A stretch of DNA of 64,000 bases from Phallusia mammillata (taxonomy: Eukaryota): the NCBI GenBank assembly GCA_965637545.1, contig OZ281497.1:17050001-17114000 (forward strand), in the 5' to 3' direction. Positions within the stretch are counted from its first letter, which is position 1; each line of letters begins with the position of its first letter. The notes beneath the pieces are model-generated. The model was not told the origin of the DNA. It made no database searches and was given only the letters and a program-made list of their open reading frames with translations. Position numbers and translations under genes: made by a program. Positions 3,001 to 50,400 of the stretch are shown here, one piece after another.

Positions 3001-4315
3001 TCTCTGCAACAAAATAATAACATGCTTGTAATTTTAGACTTTATGTATAACAGAGTTAAATTTGAGTCAACCTACTTGGTTGCTTTCATTTGACTTTTCT
3101 TCTTCTTTTTGTTTCCAGCCTTCTCTTCCAGTTTTTGCTTGTCTACTCTTGGTTCTATGTCATCAAATGGGTTTGCCAAAACCTATAAATAAGTAAAATG
3201 TAATTGTCAGATCACTGAGTTTGTCACAGTGTTTAAATTCTCGGAAGTTTTTACTCCATATTCACTTCATATTTTTCAAAAATTGAATAATAATCTTTTC
3301 CCCAACATAACAGGTGTTGACGTAAATACATAGCATCTAAATAACTTGCTCATAAGCAGGCACTACCAGCTGGTTTGAAAGGATATTACCTATCATCATT
3401 TATTAAAACACCATTATTCATTTAAAATCACATAAACAAACTGTTAGTTGGAAGTTTGAATATTAAAACTGTCAGCATATAACACAGCATGGTTTCAACT
3501 TGTACCTTGGTCCATTTAATAAATGGAGGGTTAATAGGACGTTCATCACCAGTTGTCCCAACTTCACCAAGTCGAACAAGATTGTAGACTGTATCCCCTG
3601 TTACCTAAAAACAAGTAACAATCTTTTTACAATATTTGAAACACTGTATAAATACATTATGTTTTTGAAATCGTCCACTGAATATTACCTTGCCAAATAT
3701 GGTGTGTTTCTTATTTAAATCATTACATGGGCCAAGGGTGAAAAAGAATTGACTTCCATTATCATCTGGACCTGAATTTGCCATGGCAACAAGACCTCTT
3801 CGAACAAATCGCAACCTTGAGTGAAACTCATCCTGATATAAAACATAGACTGTGTTTACACTGATACACACACAAATACATTCAATCTGCTCAGATTGTA
3901 CCTTAAATGGTTTTCCAAATACAGATTCCCCACCCTGACCAGTACCAGTTGGGTCACCTCCTTGCACACAAAAGTTTGGGACAACTCGATGAAAAATTAC
4001 ATTGTTGTAGTATCCTTGTGAATGACAAATGGGGAATATTAAAATCTTTGACCAGACTGGGGCATCATAATCATAATCAAATTAGAAACAGAAAATGTAA
4101 CTGTCATAAGTTAAATTAGCACTTTTGACAACATTTTGTGATTTTTTATTAGTGCTAAATAACTGTTGTTAATCACCTTCCAAACATAGCTGCACAAAGT
4201 TGCGGCATGCTATTGGTGCTTCTTTTGACCATAGTTCAACATCTATATCACCCATAGAAGTATGAAGTAAAACCTTTCCAAATGTACTTGGTTCTTTAAT
4301 GTAAATGTTACTCAT
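7..4315 (-). CDS. CWC27: Spliceosome-associated cyclophilin CWC27, 14 coding exons, about 513 aa
   Basis: Phase-consistent GT-AG exons: 4177-4315, 3902-4014, 3689-3832, 3506-3604, 3076-3182, 2934-3003, 2449-2574, 2267-2383, 2158-2204, 1973-2109, 1470-1576, 754-899, 274-411, 7-58. Diagnostic peptides: MSNIYIKEPSTFGKVLLHTSMGDIDVELWSKEAP, QGGDPTGTGQGGES, NGSQFFFTLGPCNDLNKKHTIFGK (acidic residue where cyclophilin A has Trp121, as in CWC27), FKLLSFGEEAEEEE, KSKSSHDVLNDPKLS, EELKKESKRL, DRFDISDPRNPLNQRRRE. Confidence 0.95.
995..1275. mobile_element. Non-autonomous hAT MITE (Buster-like) in a CWC27 intron
   Basis: Imperfect TIRs CAGTGGTTCCCAACC ... GGTGGGGAACTACTG, flanked by an exact 8-bp TSD GTTTATGC (987-994 and 1276-1283). 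No coding capacity. Confidence 0.9.
1609..1886. mobile_element. Degenerate hAT-type MITE in a CWC27 intron
   Basis: Right end TTGAGAACCACTG (to 1886) matches the TIR family of the other MITEs. The left end is degenerate and its boundary approximate; no clean TSD. Confidence 0.45.
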
Positions 4316-6516
4316 ATTGCAGATTTTACCAGAGAGAAGATATGCAACTAGTTTTGTACAAATGAAAATGTTTTTCCTGCCAGTTGATGTGATGTTCAAT
4401 TAATAGAACCTAATCAATGATCAAATTAAAGTCACAAACCCATCTTAACAAAACATAAAATACCAAGAAATGTACTGGATTTTCGACTACGTGCAAGCAT
4501 ATAGCAGCTCGCTGTTATATAGTCGTCGTAGATAAAAATCAAAAGGTAACATTTTTTCTGTTTTGTAAACTCGCTTTTGTAAATTAACTCCAGCGCGCAA
4601 ACACTGCTCGAAGGGGAATCACCTGCACATTTGGGAAAGATGTTTACTCTGCCCTCATTGTTTTGTACCGAATATTATTTGACCACCAATGCATAGTTTA
4701 AACAAATACTACAACTGTTTGCATTGCAAATTATTTTTACTAAATACTAGACTTTTTCTTATCAGTACTTTCGTCATCAAATTTTTGTTTGAGGTGACGA
4801 TAACCTAAATGCATTAAAAACAACACCGACATAGTCAGTTTCATTCTTCAAATCCAATCGTGACAATCATTCATTTTTTACTTTCATTGAGAACTATAAT
4901 CGATTATATCGAGTATGAGACCCGCAGATTATTACCCTGATTAATGCCGGCTGCTGGCCGAAAACAGCCAGAGATTTCTACAATTATCTGAAGAAGTTTC
5001 CACTCATTTGTATATGTACTATTTATTAAAAGCAAACAACAAAAACAACAACATGGCATCTATTCAATGTGACGACGAATTGTGGGCGCGATGGTAGAAC
5101 AAAAAATACAGTCATTAGAATAAGAGGGCTTGCAAAAAATAATCTGAACAAGAAATACGACGACATATGCTGAAACGTGCGGCTGTGAAAAATCAAAAGC
5201 CGAAAAAATAAAGAGGTGCGCAAAATAAGTGAGGAATGAGTACAGAGAAAGAATAAAATGAAAACTTTTCAAAACAATGTTTAATAGTGGTTACTGTTGG
5301 TTAATTAAAACTAGTTAACAACATGTTGGGAAACAACTTGCTATTTTATATGATTTATTAAAGACCCACACAATAGACCACTAATAGGCCTATCTTAAAA
5401 TCCTCCACCCTAAGTTTTTCAACAGTTCAGTTTGTGAGAAGAATTGCGGTGAAGGCTTTATGCTGACATCAGCATCTTCAAGTCGTTTTGCGCTTGTCGA
5501 AATTCGAAAAAGGGTAAAAGGCGATCGCACACAACACAACTCGTACAGTGAGGGGCGGTGGACAGAATTTTATCACAAGCGACGCAAGAAAAACAAAAGT
5601 TGGCGAATGTCGACAAGCAATAAATAGTGCACTACAGAATAGGGGTACGCACAATTACCTAGTTCCTACACATCCACACAAGTAAAAAATGGGCTTCGTT
5701 GGGTTTTTCAAAAAATATTTTTGCTTCAACTTGCAACAATTTTAGTCTTGCTAAAAATACGTTGAAAAGTGTAATTTTGACTTCACTTTTAACTTGAACA
5801 ATGCCTGATGGAGGTTAAAGCAAGTGCAACAGCTTTGCACCTGACCAGGATTAAATAGATGGGAACAATTGTGGGAATAAAAGGGTGATCGTCGAGCAAC
5901 AAACAAAAGACAATTATTTAGAAAGGTGTAAAATCTAAGAAAAACGAATTGTCCTGTTCCATTTCTTTCTGTTGAGCATGAAACCCAAAGTCTACAGCAC
6001 AAATTATTTGACTTCAGATGTCTTGATGCTCATAAAACAAAAGAAACAGAAAAGGAATTTCGTCATTCTATGGTGGTTGTTATCCTAAGAGCGACACAGT
6101 ATCGCAATATAGAAATAATAATAAAAAACTACACCGCACACAATACCTTTTCCCTTTTGGAAAAGTGACAACATGATGACGATACTGTGTGATATGAACA
6201 GTTACGCACTAGTGTAAGTGATCAATTGCAATAACGGTGATATCAAAGATTTGTAAAGTGTTTAAGTGGGTGGGGCGAACAAATCGTACCATAAGTAAAA
6301 CACAACTCCTGTACGATTTGCCACAGTTACATAAAAACAACATTCCAAACTACATGACGGAAATACGTCAAAGCCACCTTGGACATTTTTTTATCCTTAG
6401 GCGGGGCCAACTTTTATACCCATATTAGGAAACAGGCAGTTTTGAGCGCAGTCTTAAACGCCGTCCCTTATTCCGGAGCGTAGCGATGTTTTTGCGTCCG
6501 GGTCAGCAGAGTGAGA

Positions 6517-8473
6517 TCACCGGTCACGGCAGGAACGCAGGCTGGGTGTGTTGAGGGCGTCGTCCTTAAAGCTTACAACCTCACCATGGATCTTAAAGGT
6601 CGACACACAACCGACAAACGAGTGGAAAAATGATTTGTAGAGGCCGACGCCTCTGGGTCGATAGTCCACACCACCTAAAAACAAAGCAAAGCGCGTTTTA
6701 TTTTCGTTTCGAAGAAAAGGTGAATGTTATTGCAGCGTATTGAACCTAGATTTAGTAATTGCATCCGTTTAAACTCCATAACATTGTAATGTTGCGGAGC
6801 TGTTTTCAGTTCGATAATTGTTTTAGTGCAATTGTGCAATTTTGTGTTTGTCTTTATTGCATAAAATATTTCTTACACATATGCTAATGAAGAAACATTG
6901 AAAATGCATGCACAAGGGCAGAATTCAGTTAGGCTATTGCTTACCGATCCAAACATTTCCATCTGTGTTCAGTTCCCGGGTATTTCCCTGCGCTACAACC
7001 TCTTGTGGTATTCCGTTATCGACGCTCAGCGTGGCTTTGGCGAATTTTCTGTATGTGCAAGTTGGGTTTTAGCAAAACAATGCTCCCGAATCAAGCCAAT
7101 TTATAATATACTTTAATAGATCGCACCTGTCCACTTTGATGGTGTGGAAACTGTTGTCGTTAATTCGCTCTTCCGAAATAAGGTGAGCAGGACCAGAACC
7201 GAGGTTAAATCGCAAGTGGACTCGTCCGTCGCTAATAGTTACAGCCAAGTAATCATGGTTGTCGATCGCCTTGCCGGCCATGAGCAGCAGACCGTGACGC
7301 GCAGTGGTGCGTATCACAAGCTCGAAGCGATTATGGCGAGTTGCTCGACTCCTTAAATAGAAAGAGTGTTAAGAAAGGAGGTTAACTAAATGAATTGGAT
7401 TTGGGCAAGTGGGAAAAAGTAATGTATTGGTTGAATGGTTCATATAATTTCTAAATGAACTCAGATACCCATGCACTGATGACGTTTGTTTTTCCACAAA
7501 AAGTTTTAAATTTTGAAACAAAGTCTATGATTTAGAGACATATACGTTGTATGCTTTGCTGCAGAAACCACTACAAACGCATAGTTTTGTAAGTTTTCAA
7601 CATAACACAATGCATGAAAACGTACTTAGGGGCAAAAGACAATGCATGCCGATTAAGAACAACAAAATCATGTTGATTTTGTAAATTTGTGGTATATGAC
7701 ATGGAATGTACTTAAACAAAAACTACATTTAAGAAAAGGAATCGGAAACTAAAACAAAAAGTTTTTGTAGAGCATAAAGTGTGATGACAAAACAAGAAAA
7801 CATTTCGAAGTTTTAAATATTGATCAAGTTATGTGGACAAAATGATTTCAATGACTGTTAGAATGAAGACACATTAACTGGTTAGTTTCCAAAAACACTC
7901 GTCTTACATTGGAGTGAAGGCCCTGCAAAAACGACAATAGATAGAAAATTGTCACCAGTTGTAGTAAACCTGTTTAACTTGTAGTGAAAATGTAGTTTTA
8001 ACAGTTAACTAACAATAAATAAATTACTTTGACCACGATTTGATGAATGATGAGCGACTGATGGCATGAATACTTACATTGGAATAAAATTGTTTTTGCT
8101 CTCTCTTGCGGGTGGCAAGAAAAAAGTAAATTAGATAAGGATTTAAGTTAAAAATGTCAAGATCTCTACCAATTTCCATTGCACTATATTTTCGCACCTA
8201 AGTTCTGACAGTCTAATCTGGAGGTTACTATAACGCATACGTTTACCCATCATTACTTAACACAAAATACGATTAAAACAGAAAAAAACGTTTTAAAAAT
8301 TTACGAACGGTCATGTTATTCTTAGTATTTAAAATGCAAAAACTTTAAACAAAATGTAACTTACTTTTCCTTCACTGCATTCCTGTACATTGCCACCACC
8401 TTCCCGTCGAAGTAAACCGCCGACGCCGCTTCATCGCGTAATACATTGACTGAACTTGTTCTTTCAGATGCCC
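6517..8473 (-). CDS. AGRN: Agrin LG3 domain exons
   Basis: AVYFDGKVVAMYRNAVKEK / SRATRHNRFELVIRTTARHGLLLMAGKAIDNHDYLAVTISDGRVHLRFNLGSG ... LNTDGNVWIGG ... FVGCVSTF ... SC; TGA at 6517-6519. Confidence 0.92.
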
Positions 8474-11400
8474 CTGTTTGAACAACAACATAAAAAACTT
8501 TAAAGTCAAGTTATTGATTTGAAACGTATGAAAAGGACTTAACGGAACAATCGTCATTTTTGTTTTTGTTTTTTAACTGAAAAAGTTTCTGTTTATATGA
8601 TTTGGGCTAACTTCCGTAATATGGACCAGACTTATATTCTTGCAAGTATGCATTAACGGGCAAAAACGGACTTCACTTACACTATAATACAAAGCCAATT
8701 TGACCAAACCGCGAATATTCGGTACAATTTTTTCAAAAGAATGGTAAAATCAATGATGGAAAATGGGTTAATTATAAATTGCATTACAAATTTGATTTTT
8801 ATTTCAACTTACGTTCGTCGCAACGGGAACCGGCGTAACCCTCTGCACACAAGCAGGTGAACTCGGCTTTACGGGGATAACACGTTCCACCATTCTCACA
8901 AGGTTTATGATAACACGCATGTGCATTGAAGGGCTGCACATTCCACTGCGCAACTCCGCCACCAGGAGTCAGAGACAGCGATATCCCGTTGACTTCAAAC
9001 TACAAACATAAACACTTTGTTACTCCGAAATATCGACACAAACATCGTTTCATTAGTGGGTGGTAACATTGTTGCCAAAATATGAAATCAGACAGGTATG
9101 TTTATTTATTTCCAGTCAGCAACCTGGAAAAATAGTAACAAAGAGAAATGTGCCGTAAACAAAAAAAGCTTAAGCAAGGACAAAAAAAGCAATCATTTCA
9201 CAATTTTTCAAAAATCGGCAGTTTTCTTTTTTCCTTTTCGTTACAAAGCCCCTGTTTGAAGTGTGAATCAAAGTGCAGTCATTTTTCCTCCTATGTGCCA
9301 ACAATTTTGCGTTGAGTAAAAAAATCTTTTTATCTTCATTTTTTTGTTTAAAAAAAATCGTTTTATCTTTATAACTTACCTTTTGTAAGGCTCCAACAAG
9401 GCCAGTTGTAATCCCGGTTGCTTTCGGTATCTTAGTGTAGTCAGGAACTCCACCCAGATATAAAGGTTGGTCCACGTTCAACTCAGAGTGGAGATTCTGT
9501 CGCAATAAAAATAAAATAAAAATGTCAATCCCTGTCAGCAGATAAGTGATAAACTCAGCTCAGCCGAGGCATATCCTGAAAAGCCTTTCGTTCTGGAACT
9601 TACCCAATGCTTCATATACCATTTGCGCTAGCGTGAAAAAGCATAAAAATTCAGTTAAAATGTGTCAACTGAAACACATTTATACCACAACAATCTCAAA
9701 AAACATCGACATAACCACGACATCAAGTATGTATTACCAACGGCAGCAAGCATGTCGAAACAACATTTTGTAACCAAATGTCTTGAGTATATATTATTAT
9801 CACTAATGCATGACTTTGACGTGCACAATTTTCACGCTTCTGTGCATCGTTTTTAAATGTAAAACAACAGCGAAACCACATAAGACACTAATACGGCAAA
9901 CGAACCTTGTTTTTCACGGACGTGCGAGCTTTCTGTGATATATAACATTCAGAGGTGAAAATCTACCGATTACCGGATGTCCCCTATCCTTAAGTACTAT
10001 AACTTATAATATAGTCTATAAGCTACCCTATTGACAATATAAAGCCCATAAAATAAAACTATCGCTGAATAAACGTGTTATGGAATGGCTGTGAACTTAC
10101 CGGTGACGTTCCCTGGACTGTAGGTCCGTTGTCAATTGACATCTCACCATGACGATTCTCACGTGACAATCGAACCACGTGCCACTCGTTGAGGCCAACC
10201 GGTGACGCACTCCTAATACATTAAATGTGGAATTAGTTGAGCTTACCTAAATGCCTTTTAACAAACGATGCACTCTAGTAAAGTAATACACCTATTTTAT
10301 TTATTTTCAAGTTACCTTATTTTTGCCAACCCCTGTCCAAGATCGTACATGTATACAAGATATCCGTCTTTGAGGTTAAGAGCTACCAAGTCTCTCCTAC
10401 TCTTGCCCTCCTTCTGTTGATCGTTGTAGAAAATCAAACCTGGGCATAAAAGGTCTTACACATTAGATATTTGGCTTTGCCCGCGCTCTTGGGTGCTCTA
10501 TAGGGCAGCAGTTTTGTTCTACTTTTTCTTATCTGTAGCAAAGGTGTTATTATCAATGCATGTTACACAACATTGAAGAACTGGGATCTAACTATTGACT
10601 TTATAAGAAATGTGAAATTATGAATAAACTTGAACTGACCGTCGGGTTGACTTGAATAAAACAAAACTTCCACCGACATTGACGAAGCGACGTCACTGCT
10701 CAATGGTTCAAACTGCAAGTAGGAATCCTCGGCAAACGCAGGCATGTAACCGGGACCACCCAAGTCAAGTTCGGCTGTAAGAAAAAACAATACAACTGCT
10801 AATCCATACCCACATAAGTAATGCAGTGGTTCGTGGCTCGGTACCAAACTACACATATTGTAAGCTAATACAAAAAATCGAAGAAATTGGCTAGCAACGT
10901 TAGTATGATTTGTATTGTGAGACGTAAAGCGGATTTTGGCAACAAATAAGTTTAACACGGAGTTCTACGATTTTCATTTTGTCGTGAACACTCTAACTTT
11001 GTCACCAATTTCAAAAGCACAACGACTTTCGCTTTGCAAAGATAAACTTTTGCGACAAATTTTAAACATTGGCCTAATTAGATTTTTATGTACTTACATA
11101 TAGAACAGACACCTTACATTAAAATAACAGCAAGTTACTCAAACAAAACAGTTTAAACTCACAATCCATACAAAGGGATCCGGACCTTCCAGGCGGACAC
11201 ACACAAGTGTAACCGTCACCATTTTCACTCCTCACACATGTTGATGACAAGTGACACTGATGGGCGATACATGGATCTTTCGGTTTCTTTGTAACAGGTT
11301 GTTCACATGTGGGTCCTGCATTAAACGACAGTGTTTCGTTATACCGCATCGAGAGCATTTCTTAAAAGGTTTACGAAGAAATCTTACCTTCGAATAATCC

Positions 11401-32400: not shown

Positions 32401-35400
32401 GGGTACGGACATACCTGGCTTCTTTTTGGGAGGTTCAACGATGCTTTTGCCTGCAAAACAAAATGCAAAATGTTTAATGTTTAACGTGTTTAACGATAAT
32501 AAATAGGGCAAATTCATAAAGTTGGCACAAAGTTTTTTAAAGTTACTGGCACATAATCTTGTGTGTAGTTTTTAGCTAAGCCTTTTCAAAAATAGATAAG
32601 CGTTTGGACAAGACAGATCGGTGGGCGGTGACACAGCACAAGGCCGATCTGTCGGCAAACGCCTGCACGCACCTGCCCCAACCGCCACATGAAAACGGTA
32701 TGTCCACAAGACACGGGAGATCACAGGGTAAATGACGAGAAATGCCCGATCAAGGAGATCTGTCTGTTTGCTATGATGGAAGGGATGAACCGATTTCATG
32801 CAACGCTGACACATGCGTAACGTGACGTTAGAAATGCGTCAGGTAAAATCACTTAAACGCGATGCATGAAAGGTTTAAAATCTACCCAACTTGTGAGAGG
32901 AATTACCTATAACCCAGGGCGGTACCTTTATCGAAGCCGAATCGTAGTAACACTGAATTCAGTCACTAAACTCATCACTTGTCACTGAATAAACACACAA
33001 AAATGTGGAACAAACGTTTCGGACGATTAAGCAAAACAACGCATGGACGAAATACTACAATGAATCCTTTATTTCCGAGCAAATGGAAACAGACTGAGTA
33101 ACTTACAACGCCTTACGTGACATAAAGAGTCCAACTCACGTTCATGCTGGCAGAAGGAACGTGCCACATGAAATGCTACATGGTGATGGCGAAACGATAG
33201 TGATGGGGATATCTAAGGCGCCGTGTGTTTTCTTTTCACAAAGTATACAACTTCAGTATTTAGGAAATCATAATAGGAGCTAATTCCAAATTGAGCATAT
33301 AAAACACCGCGCGGCTGAAACCAAAGGTCAGCTCGGCACCCTTATTAGTCCTACAGCCAGTATATGGATGTTTGTGGTTTAAATTTATCTTTTGTACAAT
33401 TGCGGCAAGCGGCTCCCTAAAGTTGGTCCACAAAGTCAAGAGAATGTGCGCGGTGTGTTATGTGGTCTGACCGGGTGCACTTGAAAGCTTACCTTTATCG
33501 GTGCGAAGTAACATCGGGTTAGGTGCGAGCGATTATACACAGACGTGACCTGGCTGCGGCGATCGGGCTTATAAGACGAAACCCGAAGCCCGAGAAGCTA
33601 TAGCGAAATCCACGGCAAATAGCGAGATCGCGTGACCGATCTAAAACAACGGGACAGACGCCAAAGTCAATACCCGCTCGGCTAGCCAAGTGGCCGCTTT
33701 ATTTGCTAACGGATAGCAGGAGGACATTAAGGTAAATCACTTCCACGTCGCGAGTACTGCCACGCAAAAGGGGAGTGTACGATGTTGTTGATGGCGAGAT
33801 ACGGAAAAAAGCTTTCATCACGTGCTGACCGACGAACCGGAGGATCTGAGTTCGGTGTTAAAACTGCCACCGTTGATGTAAATCTAGAGTTAGAGAAAAG
33901 TGTTTGCGCGACAGCTTTGTACTGATTTTTTTTTGCCCAGCGTTGAGACAAACTGATTTTGCCTTGTCGGCGAAGTTCTTTTACTGCTTAAAAGTCTTGA
34001 AACGAAACTGACTGAAAATGCTTCAAGTTGACTTGGAGAGCCAATCGACAAACAAGCCCAAAATGCCAGAGATTCATCGGTTGAAAAGGCTTCAGGATAC
34101 GAGCATAAACTTCCCGATGCATCCAAAACGCAAACACGACTTGCAGCATTTAAACAACATCCGCTCGGATTATCCGACGGCATCCGCGTGCTGCGTGCAG
34201 TTGCCTAGCAACGTTGTTGTGGGGTAATCACCGCTCGTTCACAGTCGATGCTCAAACAAATTACCCGGCGACCCGTGCCCGGATTCGGCTTATTAGGAGC
34301 TCGAGCTGCAATCCTTAGGCTTCGCGGTTTGCAGCTCGACCTCCGGGGTTTATCGCGATAAAACAGGGGGACCGAATCGTAAGGCGACCACAGTTCAACC
34401 TGACTGAAGGCATTAGAGTTGAGGTTGATGTGAGGTCTTAACCAAATCTCCCCCGTCTTTTCGCTAGTATCTTAATTGGCGCGTATCCAACACCAAAAGC
34501 AATGTTAAGGCGCAAACTGCCTGATGGTATACGTAAAGATTTTACCTGACAGCTTTTAACAGTTGCCCGTACTTTTAACGGTATTTTCACAACAGACTAC
34601 AAAATAAAGTCATAAAACCGAAACTGATAAAGCCAAACCGTGTTTTGCAAGATACTAATCTGTACCTGCATTGACCTTGCCAATTTGGAGTTAAAATTCG
34701 CGGTGCGGAATCGACGCGTTTGCAAAATGTGTCGGTTTCGAATTTCAAACCCAAGTCAGGGTTCGACTCTCTCAAGTCTGACCCCGATGTTTGCAAGTTG
34801 TTCTTGGCTATTTGCGATCTTGCGCCCGCATCTACTTAGCGTAGGTAAACACGCGACCACACACAGTATGCTGGGTGCTCCGCGAAGGTGTTTAACAGAC
34901 CTGGACTTGTTCTCAATGTGTTGAAATCTCGGCACAAACAGAAAGCCTTATACAAAGATTGAACAGACAAAACCTCTTGTGGTAGTCCATCGGATTCGAA
35001 AAGTTTCTGTTGGGTCACTGTAGGACTGCTGTGTTGTTTACGTTTTCCGTTTTAAGTCGTGAAATGCCGTGGAAACAGGAAAGACGTTGACGTAGCATTG
35101 AGACCACCGCAGTCGGTGGGAGAAGGCCTTAAGGTCGGGCGGAAAAGTTCAGTGGCACGGATTTCTGATCGGCGAAGTCAGAAACGGCAGATGCGGCCAA
35201 ATTAGGCAGGCGCCTTGCTGCGAACCTACAGACTCTGCATCTTTAAACTTTCTAGCGGTTATTGCATTCCGAGCATTTTATTTCCCCTTCAGGCCAAGCA
35301 ATTGATAAACCTCAATGCCAATGCGCTTCGACACCAAACCACCACTCCCATTAGCGACACGCATGACCGAGCGAAGAGTCACGTGATTGGGGGCGATGGC

Positions 35401-38400
35401 AGAGTTCAATTAGGCGAAAGTTTGTAACTTGTAGACTCTGCGATTGTAATCAGTAGCTACATCAGCTACTGTGTACCACAGGTCGTGTTAACCGCTCCAA
35501 AGTCGGTGACCCACGACGGAGCGCATCCAATTAACGTACGATGATCCATGAGCGCTGACGGAGGTGTGGGATTTGTAAGTAGTTTAAAACATGGGTCTGC
35601 GAATTTTTTTCCCTGCCCCACATACCGTACTGGGGTCATATGGAACAGTGTATATTTCATAAGCAAACTGTAACAATAAATTTCATCTTGTTTTGTAACA
35701 GTGCGACAGCGGCGGGTTCTTGACGAATCACCGGGGGCTTGCAACACGTGTTGGAGCGATCTGTTTGTTTATGAAACGCAAGACGCACGTAAGATTGCAA
35801 GTTTGATATGGGAAGAAGCGTAAGCCGCCAAATCGCAGTAACACGAAGAGTCTGCATTGCTGCTCCATGTCAATAGAACAGGGTAATGTGGCCATAATCC
35901 GAATTTTTACCGGATAAACCCGACCAACAGTCATAGGTTAATTATGTGTGTCTGAAGGACGCTTTGTTGTCGTTTAATGGTAGCTTTGTATTTCGTGGCA
36001 GATCAAGGCCGCATTTGCAAACCAGCGTCACGCTGTAAAGATCCGTGTTTGTTGCCGTAACATGATTATACGATTTCTTCTGCGCCGAAACGGATACCAT
36101 GCATTCTCGAGCCATGATTCCCCACATAAATTTGCTTACATTCCCATCAGGCACAACACACGAAAAATGTTAAGCGTAGTTTACAATTGAAGATTGTACG
36201 ACAGCTGAAAAGGGGACCTTTGTCTTGAAGCTCAAAATCGTCAAGATTAATCCGCGTTAATGACATCTGTAACATTTAAACATTAATGTAAATCTTTGAT
36301 CATAAGCCAAGCGTATCATCATCAAACACCACTGCCGTAAACCAGAACTGGGCAAAACAAACAACTTTGTCGATGAAGGAAGACCGACAGTGCGCTACTG
36401 TGTATCCAATACATCAGAAAACAGCGATTCTCCCACGCAGACAGCAAGGAGTTGTGTACCTGTCGAGCACACTGTGTAACTGCTAATGATGTCGATCCAT
36501 CACTTAGGCCAAGGACTTAAGGTCTTGGGCTCTTGGCTCGTGCTCCCTGCCTTGCTTGTGTTGGAAGGCTAACCACATAATATGTATAAACCATTTGTTG
36601 TTCCAAGCAGTATTTTGGAGAAGTATGGAGTGCAAATGATGAAGGTTTGACAGATAACAAATCCCTAACAACAAATCCACGTAAATTGTACTTTACAGCG
36701 CAAGTAATTACACCACTGGTCGTTTATGGTACCTTGACGTTGCGTAAGTACAAAAAACCTCTAGTGGGCAAATAACTGTCACCCCCATTTTGTGTTCCTG
36801 TCCACCCCCTTCATTTGAGTTGGGTCTCATTTTGCAACTTTCTTTCGTTTTGTTTGAAAAAATATTCTACAGGAAAACGGTCGACAACCTATAATTGCGA
36901 AGACAGTGACGAAAAAAGTTCAAACAAGTGAAATATTCTTTATAGAACAGCTCGTCTGGACTTGCATCCGGAACGTGGCACAAAGAGTGGACACTTCCGA
37001 AAACACGAGGACTGACCGCTTCACGTTCATTTGGTCGTATCGCAACAACATAAGCGGCATAAATCACTAAAACAGTGTGCGCGCCAACGCTCACTAAATC
37101 AGGCAAATCGTAAACACGGAACTAAAGAAAATGTGTGAAGTGTTCTTAGTGTCAAAATACGCCCCAGTGTTTTTACGTGAAACATGGTAAGTTGAGTTTC
37201 CCGGAACGACCAAAGAAGAAAAAAACAGCTTTTTTAATTGTTAAAAAAATAGACGCGGTTTAAATTTACAATTTTCATGGAAAACCCAACCCTTACATTT
37301 GGGATATTTGTAAGCGGGTTCGTTCAACTTCTAATCCAATGCGGAGGAACCTGTTTTGCATTGCCGACAAACAAAAAATATTTTTTTTGCAGTTTTTTAT
37401 CTTCATTGTAGCAAAGCAATTCAGATGAACGTTACACAGATAAAGTGCCACGCCTTTCAAGCGCTATTGGCCCGAGCAAAACGCCACACGCCTGACGTAA
37501 GTAATCTGGGTCGACAACAAACGAGAAGCGTTCACGGTCGTCGCAAGTGAATAAAGGAAATCGCACAAGAAAGGGTTGAAAGGCAACACCTGTGGCTTTT
37601 TATTTATAGTACGACATACTGAATGTATTGTCAACGGGGCATAGGCTTGACATTACACCTTTGACATCTAGTTCGACACGCACAGACATTCATTTATCCA
37701 GAGATTTGGAAAGTCAACTTCGGGATCGGTTACTCGCATTGGTTTGTGACGTCCAAAGCTTACTTGGATCCAGTAATTGGTCGCGAGGTGTCAAAGGCCT
37801 TAAAGATCGCATCACTTTGTGTCAGAACTCTTTGTATGGGGTGAGACAGGAGATCAAAGGAAGTGTGTGGAGCAATTTGTGCCACCCTTTTAAACTGACT
37901 GTGATTTGAATCAATAAACTTTTTATGTGGTCATTATGGAACAATTATCAAGCCTCAGAAGTGCAAAATATCACAAGTGCAATAAATTGGTAGGAAATGT
38001 CCACAGACATTTAAGGAAAGATTACGTAATCAACATAAGGCCTTCAATATAAGTAGGTAATTTAGTCTCAATTTTTTGGTGCCGTATTGTCACAGAGAGC
38101 CCCAAAGACCGGGCTATGCATAATTCATGAGCACTTAATTCCCTCACTTGAGGCGCATTAAGCCCAGCCAATACAGAGTTTGCTTTGGAAGCATAGAGGG
38201 GGATTTCCGCATAAATAAGAGATAGGGTTATGGTTGAAACAAGACAGCAGGTGCCCAGGTATGCAAGAAATTCGACGTTTTAAGGGAACGCTGATACAAG
38301 AACTCGATAAGGTTGCCTGAACGACAAACAGTATGAAGGATTATGCCTATGGTATCTGATGAAATTGGTAATTCTGGAATTGAAAATACTATCCAAATGT

Positions 38401-41400
38401 CACGATACAGTCGTGAATAAGACATTTATTTTACCATGTCTTTATTGTTACACTTCGGTGTCTAATAGATTTCAGTACAACGCTATTTCGTGAAACTGGT
38501 GCCAATCACGATTTAGTCTGAGTCGCAAGCCCAACTTCACGCCCGGCTTATAAAACTGACTTTAAAGTTGATCTTCACGACATCTATCTAGTTGGCCATG
38601 GAAACTACAATCGCTGTTGTATGTGATTGTGTTTGGACGGAAAATGCAACAAAATATCGCAAATTCAGCACAGAAACTAACCACCACGAATCCAACGCAC
38701 AATTTAAGCCCACACTTTACCGTTAGTTTCCCAAAGATCATTATCCATCAGACTGAATACGAAAAGGGAAACCATCACCGGATTTTGGTACGACACAACA
38801 AGATATGGGCGGTCACATCGTCCAGCATAGCACAGGCGACATGGTAGCCAATGTTAGGTCTCATTTCCGGCATTGTCTATGCGAAAAGCTGGACCTTTGA
38901 ACTCGCTACGCCAGTTAAGGTCCACATCAATGCCACGATTTATTGACACTGAACGATCAGAAGGTTGTTTGTACAACACTGCACCGGCGTAGCTCGATTC
39001 TGGTACAAAGATTTGGTCCACATACGACGCCAGGCCTATAGTATTTATTTGTTAACTTCATACATTGAAGGTTGGAGCACGATGATAAACGCTTCGCAGA
39101 TCTGGGAACTGGGAGTCAGGCGCCTACATGTCTGTGAACCGCTTTCAATACAAGCAAATGTATGATGTTCTTTAGGACGTAGGAACCAAATTCATTGGCT
39201 GTGAATCCATACTCGGGTGACTAAGGGTAGGGAAATGTCCTTTTCCCCCCATTTCCCGATTAAAGTTTAACCATTTTATGCGAATTGGTCAATATGTGCG
39301 TGTACCTTCACTGAAACCACACTTGAAGTACTATATTGCCTGTTATCACAATGACAAACAAGTTTTTCAGGAATTCGATAAACTATGAATCACCAGCTTC
39401 GTCCCACGACCGCAGTCAACCACCAGTGTCAGGCTAATCAAGCTGCAAACCGGGGCGACAGGGTGTAATTTATTCACCTAGGGTTAAAACGTCAAATCGC
39501 TTCCTGGCAAGACACACAACGAGCACAAGACAATTCGTGCAACGTCGAGTGTGACTCTCAGTGCGGAAGGAAACCCATCTATCCATTGCCATCAGACCGA
39601 CGGTGGGGCATCAATCAAGGCACTGGAGTGTGGGTGGCGAAGCGATCACTTACCATCAAATGGACGACTATAATCCGAGCATTCTATGCTTTATACGCGT
39701 GCTAGGGTCTCGCGATAATGCGGATAGAGATGCAACTGTACACGTTTGGATTGGACGGGGCAAGCACTACGCGTAATGGGATTAAAGACTGACCGGTGGT
39801 TGACAATTCCCAGGTAAGCGTGACTGAGCGAACGGCAGAGGAGGTTTTGCAGATCACGTGAAATCCTTACATAGCATTACGTCAACCTATCAGGCAATAG
39901 GCCAAACACGTTGTTATCCTCTGGCAAGCATTTCAGAGCGGTTGCTTGTCCTGTCACTCACACATTTTTAGACGCGAAAATCATTCACATCGCAATTACA
40001 GATGTCACATAAGCCGTGATTCGACACTTCCTTTCCTGCGGTCGCTGGTGGAAAATCATTAACGAGTCTGGGTGCGCCGAAGATGTTTCGGGGAGCAACA
40101 ACCTTTTAAGCGACTGGAGAAAGTAACCGACAAAGGTCCAAGTCCATCTTATACCTGGGCAACAGTTGTTTGCCGACCCCAAAGCTTGCCTTATTGTTTT
40201 TGCCTGATATAAAAAAAAAGACAGAAAACAAAAATGTTAAGAAGAAGTTGGCTAGAAAAAGCGTTATCATTGGTCAAAACAGGAAAAAAAATTAAAACAA
40301 ACGTTTCAAAATCAGCCAAGATCAAAATTATATTGCACACCTTTAAGTAATGTGCACACACGTGTGTAATTTTAAAGGAGTTTGAACCACTCTTGCTTTG
40401 CCAAACTAGAGAAACAAACCCACGACACTAAAATGAAGTCAAGAAGCAAACAAAATGCACAAAAAATGTGTGAGCCACAATAGAGCACAATGAAATTTGC
40501 CCACCAGCAAACCTTACTAAAATACAAAGTAATTATATTCAGGTTTCCGGCCAGCTAAGCCGCGGTATTTGTCTTTTAGTACCGAACGACTTCCTGGGGC
40601 TGTTTTGTTGATCTGCACTGAAGAATCTGCCAGTTTCTACGGTCGAGCGAGCATATGATTCATTTCTATGTTCAAAAAGGTCAAAGCAAAATCTAAGGCT
40701 GTCATGATTTGTTGCTGGAAACATTGTTTCCAAAGGTTTTGTTTGTTAAAAGGCAAGCAAAATGCAAAGTGAAAGGAAAACAGGAAATAACGCATTCCTA
40801 TGCGTACCTGGAAGTTTTACACACTTTATATATGCATGAACACAATGGTAGTTGCTATATATTTGACGGCTCCAACGCATGAGCGAATTCTGTTGTAGCT
40901 AAGATGCGCGCCTGCGAGGTGCTCAGCCACTAGAACGTTGTACAGGACAGAGTCTCAAAATCGTTCTAGACCCACACCACTATACATTACATCACGAATT
41001 CCAACAATACAATGTCGCTAAAATGTTTGTCCATGGTCATACAACGAAATGTGCGGCGACACGACAATAGTATGGCGTCCGTGGAAGCAATCTATAGCAG
41101 GAGGAATAGGATGATTTGTGATCATCGGCCTATACGTGACGATACGAAATCTGCTGGCATTAGGGTTAAGCATTAACCACGACTTCCTGAGTAGGGTCGT
41201 AAATTTAAACGATTGTGTCTTGGTAAGAAAACTTGTCGGGCGAGGTTCCAGATATCCAAGGGCGGGGTAAAAACACGAAGATGAGAATTGCGTTCCATCA
41301 TCGACAAGAAATATGTGTAGGCGGTAGGCGTAACGTTATTCGTCATTCAACTCATTTAGAAATGCACACATGCTTCCCATCAGCAAAAAACAACACTAGA

Positions 41401-44400
41401 GCGTATTAGGTGGAATAATATTACTGTCTAAAAATACTGACAAAATACTGGCTTCGGGTATAGACTGGAGAAGTGAACTAGTGTCCCTTTACATAAAGAA
41501 AGTGTGCGTGTGGGCAAGAAAGTAAAGCTGTGGTAAAGAATGCTGAGAGCATGACCCTGTGAAGTTTGCTATTTGCTTAATAAACAGTCTCAACCACAAG
41601 TGAATAGACGTGGCACCGCGCACTGTCGACATTGGGCACCTCGGAAGAGAATCACGCCAGCCCAGGTACGGCGGTTTGGTGTCTCATTTGAAATTTAAAG
41701 GCAAAGGTTTATGGACACTTAAACTTGTGCAGACAGTATGTCATAAATATTTGTCCGAACAAAGCCACGTGAAATTTTGACCGTAAAGTCTTTGCCTGAA
41801 ATTTACACAAAATTTACTTCGAATTGACGAAATGATAAGGAAATGTGGATTTGGTTGTACAGCATCTATAACCAATAGCGCGACAACATACCTTAGTAGT
41901 TAATCGGCTGTGGTTAGATTTTAACAGCACTTGGAATCAGTGTGTGCACTCGAGTAGCGGAACACAAAGGCCGGGTTTCCGCCCCGTCGTAGGAAGAGGT
42001 GCGATCAAGTTCAAACTATGCGGGACAAGAGGATATGAGCACACTCGAAAATCGTTGCTTGGTTGCTTCGCGCAAACTTCGCTGCAAAATTGTTTCCCAT
42101 TCTTACCTTGCAGTCGCTAAGCAGTTGATACAACGCACATCGGTGACGTCAAACAAGGGCTTCATGCAAGAGTAGTTTGTTGTGACGAATGCCTGAATGA
42201 CTTCGTGTCATTCTAGAAACTGTTTTTGTAGATCATGGTTAAGTTCTACAATAGACAACACACCGGACAAATGCACGGTATTTTGCAAAGGCATTCCTAT
42301 GACAACGATACGATAATAAATTCACATTACGACATTCAGCTTGTTGTTGATCATGTCCAGATTTTACTCCAACCATGTAAGATAACAAAGTAGTCCTGTC
42401 CACTCCGAACGCAACGACTATCAATACAGATCAATCAGAATTTACCGAGTGTAAAAAACTCAAAACAGGGGGCAAATTGCGTGTAACGCCAAGAATGCTT
42501 ATTGGGCGAAGAGCCGAACAGGTATAATCCGGCAACTACCGGTGACTACCTAATTTGTTGCAAAGGTCGACTTGGTGCATGTGGTGATTTCGGTGGCTTG
42601 CAATCACGCACGGCGGTTGTAAAAGTAATAGCCGGCATTGTTGACAGATCGGACGACAAGATGTCTGAAGCCATCATGCAAGCGAACACAAAGAGGCCGA
42701 ACGAGTGGGCGGCGCGTCTGTCATCTTCTTGACGGTCGTAAATTTGTCGCAATGCAACTCGGGCGCCTCCCACGCGCATTCAACGAGTCCGGACGTTTAT
42801 TTGCACACCGAAGGCTGGTGGCTGACCAAGTTTTTAAATCCGCTATACTCGCATTACCTAATTCCAAAAGTTGTTGACCAATTTAAGCCAACATGTTGAA
42901 ACAAAATCGCATATGGCATTATTCTTGAATGTAACAGTACATTTGTGGAGCGATTGTGCAGTTGCTGAAAATGTTTGGCACACTAACACAATAAACACAG
43001 TCAATTCCCACACCCTTCATCACAGGGTACGGTCAAGGACTTGGGCTGAGAGTCAGTTCCGCTTGTTGGTTGACAACGACCTTTCGGCAACAAAATTGAT
43101 GCTAATTCAAGTTTCTTTCGACACTACGAGCAAGCCGTGTAAGATAATTCGATCAAAGGCGTAACTGTTAACTTGGTTTGCGCCATGGCGGTTTCCTTTG
43201 CTGCAGGGAAAGCGACAGCGCGGATTTGGGGCTGGGACAAAAGAGCAACACACTGCGGTTTGTCGGTCGCCATGTTAAGCCATAAGTCGGTAAAAACAAA
43301 CAACATGCAAGGCGCTGTCCCCACAAAAGACACAACAACAGACCCACGGGCGTTAAGCTTCATTTGTAAAGCGTTTGGGGTCCAGACGCAAACAAAGAGA
43401 TTTTAGTCTGTGATATCGGGTTCAAACCACAATAAACAAAGCCGAAAATTCGGTTTGAAAGTAAATGTGCGACGTCCACAAACAAAAAAGTGACAGTGCA
43501 ATTGCAAAAGTCAAAATCTGAAATTTACGAGAAATACAGTTACCTTTGGTTTATTTGTCTCGACCCATCTGTTCCATCTTGTATGCAACTTGTGGTTAAC
43601 AAACAATTTTTGAGCACATAAGTACAGTGTGAACTTTATCGCAGAAGTCTGTAACGTCTACCGTCCTAAAACATCACTACTTCTACAAAAGCGTAACAAG
43701 GTCGGAGAATAGTAGATGAGAATGAGAAGAGCACACAAGTGGGATTCCGCCAAGTGGCAAACATCCACAACGAGAGGCGTGGGAGTGTGCCAAGTGCAGT
43801 CACATCGATCAGTCCCTCGTACTGCTAACAAGCGGCAAACCACCACGGCCCAAAACAAACCACAGGTATTCGATCGTCCAGTTTACCGCGAGCAAATATT
43901 CAAACAGCCACACCATGGCAACAGAACTCGACGCATGTCCGTTGCATTCACCTCAGGGTCGTCTCGCCCACCCCCAGCTTTTGTCCGTGCCACAATACGG
44001 CGTAACAGAAGACGCGATTTCGGCGGCGTTTTCAACACAACAATGTGACTCTCGTTGCCGAAACCTCGCGACTTTGGAGCTCGGACGGAACCCAGCGTCG
44101 GTTCGCATTGAATATGACAGAGCGACTGAAATAAGTCGGCCCAAAGGTGCTTGTTAAATATTTGTAGGTGTTGAAAAACGCCTGCATCAACTGACTGCGT
44201 ATAATGCCCCGTTGGGAACAAAGCCTTTTTGTCACTGAGATTGTCTACGTCTGTGACAAGGGTGCTCGTTTAGAAAAAGATACTCCCTTAAAGCGCATTT
44301 TTATGTACTTCGTGGGTCAATAGCAGAAATACAGAACAACGCAACAGACCAAATATACTTCTTGATAAATTCAGCACAATAAAATCTCAATTTTCACTGC

Positions 44401-47400
44401 ACCTGTCCATAAGGACATACAACCAAAACGGGATTTTGGACGTGTTGAAGAAGTATGCCCAATGTATTGGGTTAAATATGTAAGTCACTAAAAACAACAC
44501 AACAATTTTCGTTCTCGGTGTACGTTCATTGGACATCTCCTCGTCCCAGACGTAAGGCTCGCAAAGTCACAATCGACAGCAGGCAAACATTCAATCAGGA
44601 GAAATGCTTAACAACAGATCTTAGAGAGAAATTCGATAAAGTCAAACGATATAGCGAGGCCCAAGGGTTCCACAAGTTTGTCAATCAAGTAATTGCCCCC
44701 GGTCGATAAGCGCTTAAGTGGTAGGCGTCGTCTCACAGCACCAGTTAAGCAGTATCGATTGATAGAAGCAGATTTTCTACGTATTGATTGGGGGTTGAAG
44801 CATCACGACTGAGAGTTCATTAAACAAACGAAGGAAAAGTGATTTTAAATCGATCCAAAAGCTGTTTATAATTATCTCAACAAAATTTAAGGAAACAAGC
44901 TCAAGACATTTGCAAGCAATTGAGAGGTATTTTGGAATACAACAGAGGTAAAAAAACGAAACTACAAGCAAGAAAATATTTGTGCTTTTAGTCTTTGCAT
45001 GTATTTTAGTTTTTGGCACGGATTAGGCTTGCACGTAAATCATTTGTTTTTGCAAAACAAACATGTACCAAACGTGTTTAAGCACTGACAGACAGCAGCC
45101 GAATCCAAGTTAACCGATCGATCAAATATGTCCGAGTGTCACTTCAATGTGACACAGCGACGCGAGTTTCCCAAATTAAACACAGGCGACGGTCGCGACA
45201 AACAGCCAACTCATAATTAGATAAACTCCGTATCGCAGTTAATCGTTGAATCGACAAACACACTAATTGAATTTGGTCCGATACAGGGGGAGGGCAGGAA
45301 TGTATATATTAGACCGACCGTGTTCATTAGTCGCATCCCTGTGCAAACATGCGTTCAGGCTAATGCCACCTGCAACTAATTCCAGGCTTACATAGCACAC
45401 TGATGTACACTACGGTTAAGTATACGGATTCCCCTCCGAGCATAAAACGACAAACTCAGACACGCCAAATCCGATCGCCCATTATCACATATTGAACTTG
45501 TGCCAAGTCAGTTTGTTCAACAGGCTTTACATGGCGGAAAAAGCAGCCGATGTCAAATCATGTAGCCTTCCGCTTATACATCGGCTGGACCTTTTCACGT
45601 GACATAATCTTTTTTAATCAAGACCAAGGACCCGCGTCATAATTCATCGGCTAATCTCTCTATAGAGCTTGGCGAGAGACGATTCCCTTTGGCCTGTGTG
45701 AGGTCTTTCGAACTTTTGAGCTGTTCCTGTCAATCCGAGGGCCTTTGCATTGCCGAATAAGTCGGTTTAAACGCGAAACCCGTCACTTTTGGCTTGTTGT
45801 TGGTCAAAACACGACACTTTCAACCTGCAGTTCTCCGATTGATAGTAATGTTTTACCACAAGCCGCCTGTGTGGTCTCTTCTGTGAAATTCAAATCGGTA
45901 AATGCAAGCAGTCCTATATGCAAGCGTGAGAACTCCCACAGAACTCCTGTCACGATTTCAGCACTGATTTTACACAATGCCTTCAAGAAATGCCACAAAC
46001 GCCTTTCACACAAGCAATCCGAATTGTTGTGTCGAGTAAGTGCAGAATTATTTATGCAAGCCTTCTTATTTACTGGAGATTGGGGGCAGAGTATGTTATA
46101 TGAATCGCAGTGTGGCATTCATGATAAGTCAAGCCTAACATCACCAAGAGAACTGTGTCCAAACAATATAAATTGTCACAAACCGGAATTAGCAACAACC
46201 CCAAAACAGTCAAATGACGACGTCGTCTTGTGGGGTTCAGCAGCGCGTGGCGTCCCTCGGCGCCTGATGCGGCCCTGCTGGCCCCGTGACCACAGCGAGA
46301 TACAGTTTCGATGCTTAAGCATGCGATCAGGTGCGTGATTTTACTTGGCACACGTACAACCAAGTCTTAAAGCGAGCGTGAAGGTGATGGATGCCCGTTA
46401 AACGGAGATGTTCTTTGCAGCGGTACTTATAACAGCAAACTGCGGTTTAACGACCGAGAAATGGAGGGCCTTAATGGGTGGTTGAACGCAGGCCGCAACA
46501 TTATCACTTGACACTGTATCTATGAATGTGAAAACACTTATAAATAGAGCTCTATTGTTTCAGCGTACCGCGGTGTGAATGCAGGTGCGACCACAACGTG
46601 TCAACTTCGATGCGACTCGTTGCACATGCAACGGTCGGTGAGGACACATCCTAGAAGCCTTACCCTTTGCTGACCTGAACATATAAATAAAAGGAAGGCT
46701 GACAGTACTAGTCAAAACCTTAAATTCCGATTTATCTTGGCCACAATCTTCAAGAAAATAAGAAAATTAACGCAAAAGAAGCGCGTTAATATAAGATTAT
46801 TCGTCTTTAAAAGTCTACAAAGAGTTGTTTCACAGTACAACAGCGCGATAACGGACGGGAACGGGGGAAGCGAGGTGTAGAGAATGACATCCGAGCGGAC
46901 TCGGCGTATGTTTTGACGACAAACTGTGTATGGAAGTGCGTTAGCTCAGGGTGTGAGTGAACCATTGTCACCAGCAAATGGTTCGTCACTTTGCCTGTTG
47001 GCGACTACAAATTACTCACTCCATTGGCAACAAACTTCTGTCGATTCCAAGCGCTTAGGTTACATGTCGCAAGCGAAGACAAGAAATTAAGCTTTAACAT
47101 ACTTTCAGAGTTAGACAATCGTCGGATTGGACCCACTCTATAACACATCGGGTGACCTGCTTGATGACAGACGTAAGTACCTATTGAAGGCCAGCAAAAA
47201 ATACAACCACCACACCACAGGTGCAAGTGGTAATGAGTAGGGTTACATCATTTTCGTTTAATTCGCATTTCTTGCAACATCTGTATGTTTTATGTGTTGT
47301 ATTTTGTTTATACCTATAACGATCAGTTATAAAGACGACAAACTGTTGAGATTCTTAATCTACGTTTGACTGATAAAAACTTGTTCTGCAGCAATCCAAC

Positions 47401-50400
47401 AAATGTACTTTAAAATGTGGACAGGCGAATATAAGTAACCCGGATATGCGTTGCTGGGTAACTTACTGAAGGCAACGACCCTTAGGATACATACAGAGTC
47501 GAGCTTTGTGGTTTCATGTTCAAGTGCAAGTGTTTCGATGCGCTCCGAGTAGCACCCCACACGACGAAGTCAGTATTATCACACGCCTGTATGCCAAACA
47601 ATACCCCGTAGCCCACGGGAACTGGTCAGAGCAAAAATCGTGGTAAAATTGGTGGCAGTTATTAAAATTGCGGTTCCTTATTGGAATTGGCGTTTATTAA
47701 CCACCTCGGTTGATATAGCGTTTTTTGATTTCGTGCCTACTGTTATGGCGGGCGCTGTCATTGCGCAGACACAACATTCATGCGCCATGTGATTAGCAGT
47801 CCATTTTATCGAAATAAATAGTCTGGCGAAGTTTGCAAATGCCACAGAACAACGAGGCACAGCAAAAAACCGTTTTGATAAGCACAGAGTGGAACTCCGG
47901 CGGATGGACAGGAAACCTTAGCTGGCATTCCAAACTTCCCGCGCACTAAAACTCCTTCTTCCTGCTCTTTAGACTAGACGCAAGTCAGGTCTTGCAGTAG
48001 GAAAAGATCGAAACAAAAAGTGAATTGTTTGCAATCGCAAGAAGCCGCAGCCATAAAATAATCGAAGCTCATATCACCTTAACACCCGTTTGGCTCTGCG
48101 TGCCGACCGCAAATCGTCGTGGATTGCACTGGCGGTAAGCTAAAGAAGCAACAGAAGCGCTAGGAATTCGGGATGAGCCCTCATGAGACAAAGCGTTAAC
48201 CCCAGCTCAAGTGAGGAACGGTCGCGCGTGGCGCAATTTAACGCCCAACATATCCATTCAAGGCAAATCGTCGTGACCGCGATGGCCGTGTTGCGCTCCG
48301 TATAAGAACCAACACAATGGTTATGGATTATAGCATCTGATGTCGGAGCATATACCATAAGTAGGGAAAAAGTTCAGTTGCCCCTTATCTGTATGTTGGA
48401 TCTGTACACACGACAATACGCCACGACCGCATGCGACGATATCTTCACGGTCGTTGTAAATGCGAGCGTTGGTAAAAGTGCTGGGTTCCTTCGATTTTGG
48501 ACAGAAACGCGACAAAATGTGTAAAGAAATGCGTTTGCCTGTAGGCTTAAATTGGCAAAGTATAATTTCATTACCAAGCGATACAGATAAAAAGTCAATT
48601 CATACGTCCAATATACGATTGTAAAAAACATTTAACGTCTTAAACTCAAGTCCATTACGAAAGGCTGGCAATAATCCCTCGAAGTCGATTGTATTTACAT
48701 ACACGAGTAAAAGTCGGCAATAAGCTCTCCAAAAGGCAAGCGCGTTAACAAGCCAAACGACCCAGCTCAAGCGATTAACAAGTACAGGCCGAAAGTGGCT
48801 TTTAATAAACCGCCACAAATCTATTACTTTACGAGCATTCGCAATGTGCTGCTGGTTGGTCAGAGTTGTTCGACCACCGGCATAAATACCTTAACGAGCA
48901 CCGTCACGGCAATGCCCGCTTCCGCAAAGATCACGAAGCAGCGACCAGTCGTAACTTTCGACAAACTGCCGCCACGTTTTTAGTCCCTCGGGCGCAGGTC
49001 GGATTCGCTTCGTTTAATGGTCACTTTGCGTATGCCGCCTGAAATTACTGTGTTCGTCGATAACGCAACGCATGGCTGGCAAAGATAAACTTTTCCGAGG
49101 TGCGTATTTGGTCATGTTTCGACTTGCTAAGGCGGTAAAAACCGTTTCACCACTCATGCTTTGTTCTCTCCGAATATTAAATACGAAAATTTAAAGCTTT
49201 GTGTGCAATACCCAAACACAAATAAAAGGATATTTTACACAGTAAAAACACTAATACGTCAGAAGTTTTTTTAAAAGGTTTCCAATACAGGTAGGAAATT
49301 GGAAATGATAAGCTGTAAACATCATAACGCAATCCTCAAGCGGTTGAGCCCAATGATGACCTGGCGTTGAGCCAACTATTCGGGCAGTGCAGAAAAGGCC
49401 ATATTTTTCGTAGCAATGCTGGTATTGGTAGCGGAGGTAGGACTAACCGTGCATGAACAGTGGATAGTTGTTGACATACCTGGAGTGCCTTTTATCGACA
49501 CACACAGGCGTGCGCGCTGGGGGCCAGTGAAAAGATCGTGACATTTAATAAAGGCGTGCAAGTCGAACTGCGCTAGTCATCAGCCCGGCGAAACAGGGGT
49601 CTGAATATTTAGGGCGATTTTGTTGGCTTGGAAAGATATAGTGTCCTTGCAGGTGACACTCAACGGGTGTCGACGGCGTAAGAATGGCTACGCGACGCGA
49701 TGAGCGTGTACGAAACGTCAGGAAGCCCAGCGACCGTGGGTCAGACAAGCCGGAAACCAAGAAACACGGCGCATCATAAAATGCACCAGAGGCCTTGATC
49801 AGCGCTCATGACGAAAAACGCACAGGTGTGCTCTGTGGGCGACTGACGAAATGCGCGGCCGCACGCGGGACTTGTACGCTCCGACAACGGCCTTTCTCTG
49901 TCGCTTAACTCGATGTTTTAGCCAAAATTTCAAGATCGGGTTACTGTCGCGCGCGTTGTTCTCAGGGGCAAAACATTACACACATGAGTCATGAGAAAGC
50001 GATTACACTAACGCTGGCTGACCTTCAATGACGGCTTGCGTGTTCTCCAAGTTGGTCAGCGTTATGTGAACCACTGAAGCTGAAAGCACCAGCCTGTTGT
50101 TTATGCGATTGACGAAAAATATTCTTGTGTCCTCTTTGTTTACCTGGTTGTAAATGTTCAAACGTTTAGGATTAATGGCAAGAATACATATTTTTCTGCA
50201 TTGTTTATACTTGTTGAACATATTGTTTTGAAATTGTCTACACAAGCCTACTATGAAAAACAGTGTAATGGAAAACACACCATGAAGTTGTAATTATATG
50301 ACATCCTTGTTTTTAAAACAAAAAGTCATTTAAATATTGTTTGCACTTACATCTGAATCGCAGTACATAATATTTCCAAGACCATAGATGTTCACAAATT

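Follow-up and report, generated by a model that had tools for sequence, protein, structure and literature searches.

The intron that splits the last laminin-G domain (LG3) in the agrin gene of the ascidian Phallusia mammillata (Tunicata, Phlebobranchia, Ascidiidae) holds two very short candidate exons, hereafter ME1 and ME2, and we consider it likely that these candidates are orthologous to the agrin Z exons of other chordates, the published Nova-dependent ones of Ciona among them. The observation of the two microexons is correct and goes beyond a chance pattern. Since Z exons that depend on Nova and encode N-x-I/V/F have already been published in Ciona and amphioxus, the Phallusia pair refines known work: it is an expected further example of a known element, with no new mechanism.

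The agrin gene and its z-site intron

The window, by which we mean the whole stretch of DNA analysed (64,000 nucleotides, without any N), carries agrin on its minus strand. An exhaustive HMMER search with the downstream LG3 exon and a subsequent word-indexed search identified a Phallusia mammillata agrin of 2141 aa (P0153; UniProt A0A6F9D5B5 / CAB3220652.1), which in a tblastn comparison with the window shows 100% identity in most exons, from ~51 kb down to 6.5 kb, and whose exact mapping onto the genome resolved 46 introns. The gene had originally been predicted, from the letters of the DNA, to be an apparently invertebrate agrin; this identity secures the assignment and refines it to a tunicate, that is, to an invertebrate chordate.

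The z intron (Table 1), at 1013 nt, exceeds its neighbours near the 3' end of agrin (78-388 nt). The upstream exon encodes ...VYFDGKVVAMYRNAVKE plus the AA of a split codon, its end reading AAT GCA GTG AAG GAA AA|GTAAGT at 8365, in phase 2, and the downstream exon begins at 7351 behind TTTAAG with G AGT CGA..., which corresponds to G + SRATRHNRFELVIRTTARHGLLL.... The latter exon matches residues 1909-1975 of human agrin 8s9p and also aligns to rat agrin 3v64_A (agrin isoform 4 in the PDB listing) and to chicken LG3 crystal chains. Regarding the junction from 8365 to 7351, spliced contigs from 4 RNA-like runs of 4 studies and the exact mapping of A0A6F9D5B5 agree, so that the intron indeed splits LG3 after NAVKEK, as had been claimed. 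An Rfam scan of 7300-8500 returned no structured RNA, and when the z intron was compared with the window itself by BLAST, no repeat or transposon emerged.

Other features of the locus deserve to be recorded. A 24-nt y-site microexon with GT/AG boundaries (9627..9604, minus strand; RKWYMKHW) is present in the deposited A0A6F9D5B5, which includes further very short exons of the same strand at 9906-9932 (27 nt), 13291-13329 (39 nt) and 32415-32450 (36 nt), and the longest agrin intron by far, 50023..32450, measures 17.5 kb. Downstream of agrin, minus-strand ORFs at 3605-4399 that bear the signature of a cyclophilin-type peptidyl-prolyl isomerase (GGDPTGTGQGGESVFG..., VELWSKEAPIACRNFVQLCLEG) presumably belong to a neighbouring PPIL-like gene.

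Table 1. Features of the Phallusia agrin z site (positions within the window)
Feature	Position	Strand	Evidence and remarks
Upstream constitutive LG3 exon	8365..8473	-	Spliced contigs in 4 runs, exact protein mapping, translation
z intron	8364..7352	-	Phase 2, within LG3
ME1, candidate Z microexon, 27 nt, ESKNNFIPM	8104..8078	-	Sequence, splice scores, control-intron scan, Ciona Z6 pattern
YCAY cluster, 5 motifs	8043..8072	-	Begins 5 nt past the ME1 donor
ME2, candidate Z microexon, 15 nt, AFTPM	7922..7908	-	Best-scoring candidate in the intron; Ciona Z5 and Clavelina counterparts
YCAY-enriched intron, ME2 to downstream exon	7352..7907	-	16 motifs against 8.4 expected; the first 150 nt hold 6
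Downstream constitutive LG3 exon	7127..7351	-	Spliced contigs, exact protein mapping

Two candidate microexons in the z intron

ME1 is preceded by a pyrimidine tract with an AAG acceptor and followed by a GTAAGTA donor, while ME2 lies between a TTTTTGCAG acceptor and a GTAAGAC donor. Both are symmetric, in phase 2, and preserve the frame. When joined by script, the exons give z0 (KEK|SRA), z9 (with ESKNNFIPM added), z5 (with AFTPM added) and z14, with no stop in any of the four. The ME1 insertion comes after K and its peptide carries the N-x-I/V/F motif as N-N-F and as N-F-I. Indeed, two registers are open to NNFIP: N-N-F, which resembles the Ciona N-D-F, and N-F-I-P, which resembles the N-E-I-P of vertebrates and of a predicted Clavelina exon. 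The two symmetric phase-2 microexons of 27 and 15 nt, the four isoform translations and the N-x-I/F motif in the first insert, all of which formed part of the original prediction, were thus recovered from the sequence.

The 3' ends of ME1 (8068-8078) and ME2 (7898-7908), together with their donors, have the 11-mer TCCAATGTAAG in common on the minus strand. ME2 was considered as a duplicate of ME1 and this was rejected: only TCCAATGTAAG (FIPM/FTPM) is common to both, the shuffle p is ~0.02 and half of the match is donor consensus. The 11-mer hints only weakly at a partial duplication or at convergence.

Splice-site strength and chance expectation

Splice sites were scored with position-weight matrices for which the remaining 45 introns of Phallusia agrin served as the training set. 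ME2 ranks first among the 20 in-frame, stop-free AG...GT candidates of the z intron, its acceptor scoring 9.4 bits and its donor 8.4 bits, which among real sites correspond to the 93rd and the 62nd percentile. The ME1 donor reaches 9.6 bits (80th percentile), and the strong GTAAG donors that had been proposed for both exons are therefore real; the ME1 acceptor, however, is weak, at -1.4 bits, under all 45 real acceptors.

This low score favours a reading in which only one exon is real, most likely ME2, or in which ME1 uses another acceptor, the AG at 8099/8100, which would give a 21-nt exon and turn K into N (N-KNNFIPM). ME2 clearly outranks every other candidate and, moreover, a Ciona minigene supplied with Nova made only Z5 and Z11, never Z6 alone (PMC12445529). 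We nevertheless judge this reading unlikely. The alternative acceptor scores even worse (-5.6), ME1 carries the motif and a YCAY cluster of its own, and the validated Ciona Z6 shows an ME1-like pattern under the same Phallusia-trained matrices: its AAG acceptor is likewise weak (-0.7) and its donor fair (6.0). AAG serves as acceptor in the amphioxus Z exon too. As a further positive control, these matrices give the top rank in the Ciona intron to the validated Z5.

Both candidates might also be chance pseudo-exons, in-frame AG...GT pairs of an AT-rich intron whose resemblance to the motif is coincidental. N-x-I/V/F is a short motif, the in-frame candidate 8057..8028 (NRSSFIKSWSK) beats ME1 in summed splice score (9.7 vs 8.2), and inclusion is seen neither in RNA contigs nor in protein collections. 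A control scan of 34,387 nt of other agrin introns in all three phases speaks against this: with thresholds set post hoc (for ME1, a donor of at least 8, an acceptor of at least -1.5 and N-x-I/V/F; for ME2, acceptor and donor both at least 8), 0 candidates pass either set. The length of the z intron beside its neighbours, the rarity of the YCAY cluster and the order, phase and 15-nt length found alike in three ascidian genera (the Clavelina exons being predicted) weigh on the same side, and we hold a chance origin of both exons to be quite improbable.

A common z site in chordates

The alignment of the whole LG3 to human 8s9p breaks between the K and the S of KEK|SRA, where the human chain has extra residues, and the mouse Z8/Z- RT-PCR products (supplement of PMC12445529) place the Z8 insert behind GAG AG|, in phase 2. 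The placement of the Phallusia microexons at the z/B site, first made from the sequence, is thereby confirmed at the level of codon and phase. The same codon is split in phase 2 in mouse, human, amphioxus (Branchiostoma floridae CM022899.1), Ciona, Clavelina and Phallusia, the codon being the one after N-A-V/I-x-x in the C-terminal laminin-G domain.

An alignment with orthologous agrin introns had been suggested as a check; a comparison of these introns reveals a like layout in Ciona and, as predicted exons, in Clavelina (Table 2). The Clavelina lepadiformis candidates (GCA_961645235.1, L001:8142-8162, 21 nt with NEIP, and 8325-8339, 15 nt encoding FFASN) are unannotated; they are the two highest splice-scored ones in that intron, and the annotated protein CAK8688853.1 is z0. 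NCBI isoforms include Ciona forms with Z11 and Z5 and amphioxus forms with ESNSIREQ. ME2, the validated Ciona Z5 and the Clavelina candidate agree in length, phase and rank; the second-exon peptides AFTPM, QFSDN and FFASN are alike in length only.

Table 2. First and second Z exons and counts of YCAY motifs in the z intron
Species	First Z exon	Second Z exon	YCAY before first	YCAY between	YCAY after second
Phallusia	27 nt, K-ESKNNFIP-M	15 nt, AFTP-M	1	6	16
Ciona	18 nt, M-PNDFR-E/D	15 nt, QFSD-N	1	0	22
Clavelina (predicted)	21 nt, I-QENEIP-D	15 nt, FFAS-N	0	2	20 (594-nt intron)
Amphioxus	24 nt, R-ESNSIRE-Q	none seen			
Mouse	z8, ELTNEIPA	z11, 33 nt			

Compared with the vertebrate z8/z11/z19 system, Phallusia has the identical codon position and phase 2, and in both cases there are two consecutive cassette exons, candidates in Phallusia, that could be combined. 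Vertebrate ELTNEIPA and Phallusia ESKNNFIPM both start with E and contain N-x-I-P, whereas the exon sizes differ (24+33 nt in vertebrates, 27+15 nt in Phallusia) and the second exons lack sequence similarity. The N-E-I of vertebrate z8 binds LRP4 (PDB 3V64/3V65; Zong et al., 2012, as cited in PMC12445529).

The 24-nt amphioxus exon lies at the same codon as ME1 and in phase 2. A pyrimidine tract precedes its AAG acceptor, and its peptide ESNSIREQ, like that of ME1, begins with E-S and holds N-x-I; the residue after its I is however not P. Moreover, the annotated amphioxus isoforms show a single Z exon and no 15-nt second exon, whereas Phallusia has ME2. As a separate observation, the AAG acceptor of the B. 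floridae Z exon (L003:34814-34837) stands behind a CT-rich tract, as do those of Ciona Z6 and ME1; the first Z exon may have had a weak AAG acceptor from early on.

Outside chordates, a 36-nt phase-2 microexon (N-PLKNKTLDKTA-I) occurs at the chordate z-site codon in the brachiopod Lingula anatina (LFEI02001231.1; L004:11090-11125), in an intron of ~3.5 kb. It belongs to the RefSeq agrin-like model XP_023930285.1 and has no N-x-I/V/F, only NPL and NKT. A brachiopod microexon at this codon bears on the published idea that Z exons are specific to chordates, against which z-site microexons older than chordates would speak.

Comparison with the published Z exons of Ciona

The Z6 (N-x-F) and Z5 microexons have been described from between exons 40 and 41 of Ciona robusta Agrin (Hossain et al., 2025, PLoS Biol, PMC12445529), and the Nova-dependent Ciona Z exons named in the original prediction are thus a matter of record. 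Their inclusion is neural and late-embryonic by RT-PCR, the Z+ forms appearing only from mid-tailbud on and in brain, and their dependence on Nova was established with minigenes and YCAY mutagenesis, CRISPR having also been used, with AChR clustering in the tail muscle of larvae as readout (PMC12445529). Mouse Nova1/2 had no effect on the Ciona minigene (PMC12445529), and the compatibility of cis and trans elements therefore differs between ascidians and mammals. The same study reports N-x-V in the Z exon of C. savignyi and N-x-I in that of amphioxus; in C. elegans and in sea urchin it found none (PMC12445529). Phallusia is unmentioned in it, and the literature searched contained no relevant paper pairing Phallusia with agrin.

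Ciona and Phallusia have two microexons in the same order, in the same intron, at the same codon and in phase 2. Ciona Z6 and ME1 are both N-x-F exons with a weak AAG acceptor, Ciona Z5 and ME2 are both exactly 15 nt long with a strong acceptor, and in both species the intron is rich in YCAY after the second exon and poor in it before the first. In contrast, the first exon is longer in Phallusia (27 nt, ESKNNFIPM) than in Ciona (18 nt, PNDFR-D/E) and the N-F-I-P register is Phallusia's; the second-exon peptides are unrelated (AFTPM vs QLSDN/QFSDN); and a tight cluster of 5 YCAY sites between the exons is found in Phallusia and not in Ciona. Inclusion, Nova dependence and function have been demonstrated in Ciona, whereas the Phallusia exons are known here as candidates.

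Nova-type motifs around the candidate exons

The remaining introns of Phallusia agrin give a background of 1.52 YCAY motifs per 100 nt. Within 40 nt after the ME1 donor there are 5, a count reached by 0.07% of the 40-nt windows in those introns, the expectation after ME1 being 0.8 per 50 nt. Enrichment is also seen after ME2 (Table 1), while the segment upstream of ME1 holds 1 motif vs 3.9 expected. By motif counts, both exons are thus followed by YCAY in the downstream arrangement typical of Nova. Among the three ascidians compared (Table 2), the cluster between both exons is particular to Phallusia.

Transcript and protein record

In all 4 RNA-like runs (4 studies; region 6400-9900) the main contig is z0, with 8365 joined directly to 7351. 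The sole deposited cDNA-derived Phallusia agrin protein, A0A6F9D5B5, is z0 as well, a collection of 15 billion proteins holds Phallusia agrin only as z0, the lone member of its 90% cluster, and short protein fragments derived from assembled transcripts yielded no match to part of LG3. No spliced contig of the 4 runs, whose tissue and stage are unspecified, includes ME1 or ME2; since contigs drop rare variants and the Ciona Z+ forms are confined to the stages and tissue given above, this absence of z+ forms is no refutation. An unspliced 210-nt contig spans ME2 with its flanking sequence (7785-7994), at a depth of 3 where the mRNA has 57; as it occurs in one RNA-like run only, it is treated as what is probably pre-mRNA noise.

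That z0 is the sole form observed, and that the peptides have strongly diverged between genera, would suit a scenario in which the Z exons were functional in the ascidian ancestor and their splicing was lost in Phallusia, leaving relics. Unused exons of 15-27 nt would nevertheless be expected to lose their AG/GT sites, their frame, their strong donors and the downstream enrichment in YCAY, and both Phallusia exons keep all of these, which makes relics very unlikely.

Proposed mechanism

If ME1 and ME2 are Z exons, as we think probable, the work on Ciona and vertebrates suggests how they would operate. In most tissues both exons would be skipped, yielding z0, the form seen here, while in neurons Nova would bind the downstream YCAY clusters and promote inclusion, giving z9, z5 or z14. 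On muscle, the first beta-propeller of Lrp4 would then meet the Asn and Ile/Phe presented by the inserted loop, and the clustering of acetylcholine receptors would be triggered. Regulation by Nova, binding to Lrp4 and receptor clustering in Phallusia are thus proposed by orthology. The YCAY cluster right behind ME1, which has no Ciona counterpart, predicts moreover that Nova alone could drive the formation of z9 in Phallusia.

A joint reading of these comparisons can be offered, tentatively and with more doubt than confidence. The N-x-I-P core might have been kept in Phallusia (N-F-I-P) and in Clavelina (N-E-I-P, predicted), the Ciona N-D-F-R being derived, and the common ancestor of tunicates and vertebrates might already have had a Z exon of the form E-x-x-N-x-I-P. 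The 15-nt second exon would be a separate innovation common to the lineages of Phlebobranchia and Aplousobranchia studied, and the YCAY cluster of ME1 could permit a Nova-driven isoform with the first exon only, absent from the Ciona minigene; the Lingula exon would leave room for z-site microexons that predate chordates.

Conclusions

If confirmed, the Phallusia exons would add a second ascidian family, beside that of Ciona, to those known to have the Nova-Agrin-Lrp4 switch, and the Clavelina candidates would carry it to a second order. The differing placement of the YCAY clusters would amount to a natural experiment on the choice that Nova makes between two exons. Moreover, the series NEIP, NFIP, NDF, N-x-V (C. 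savignyi, PMC12445529) and NSI would, once confirmed, show what the Lrp4-binding loop tolerates, and would make a more convincing link between the exon of tunicates and vertebrate z8 than the Ciona motif does by itself.
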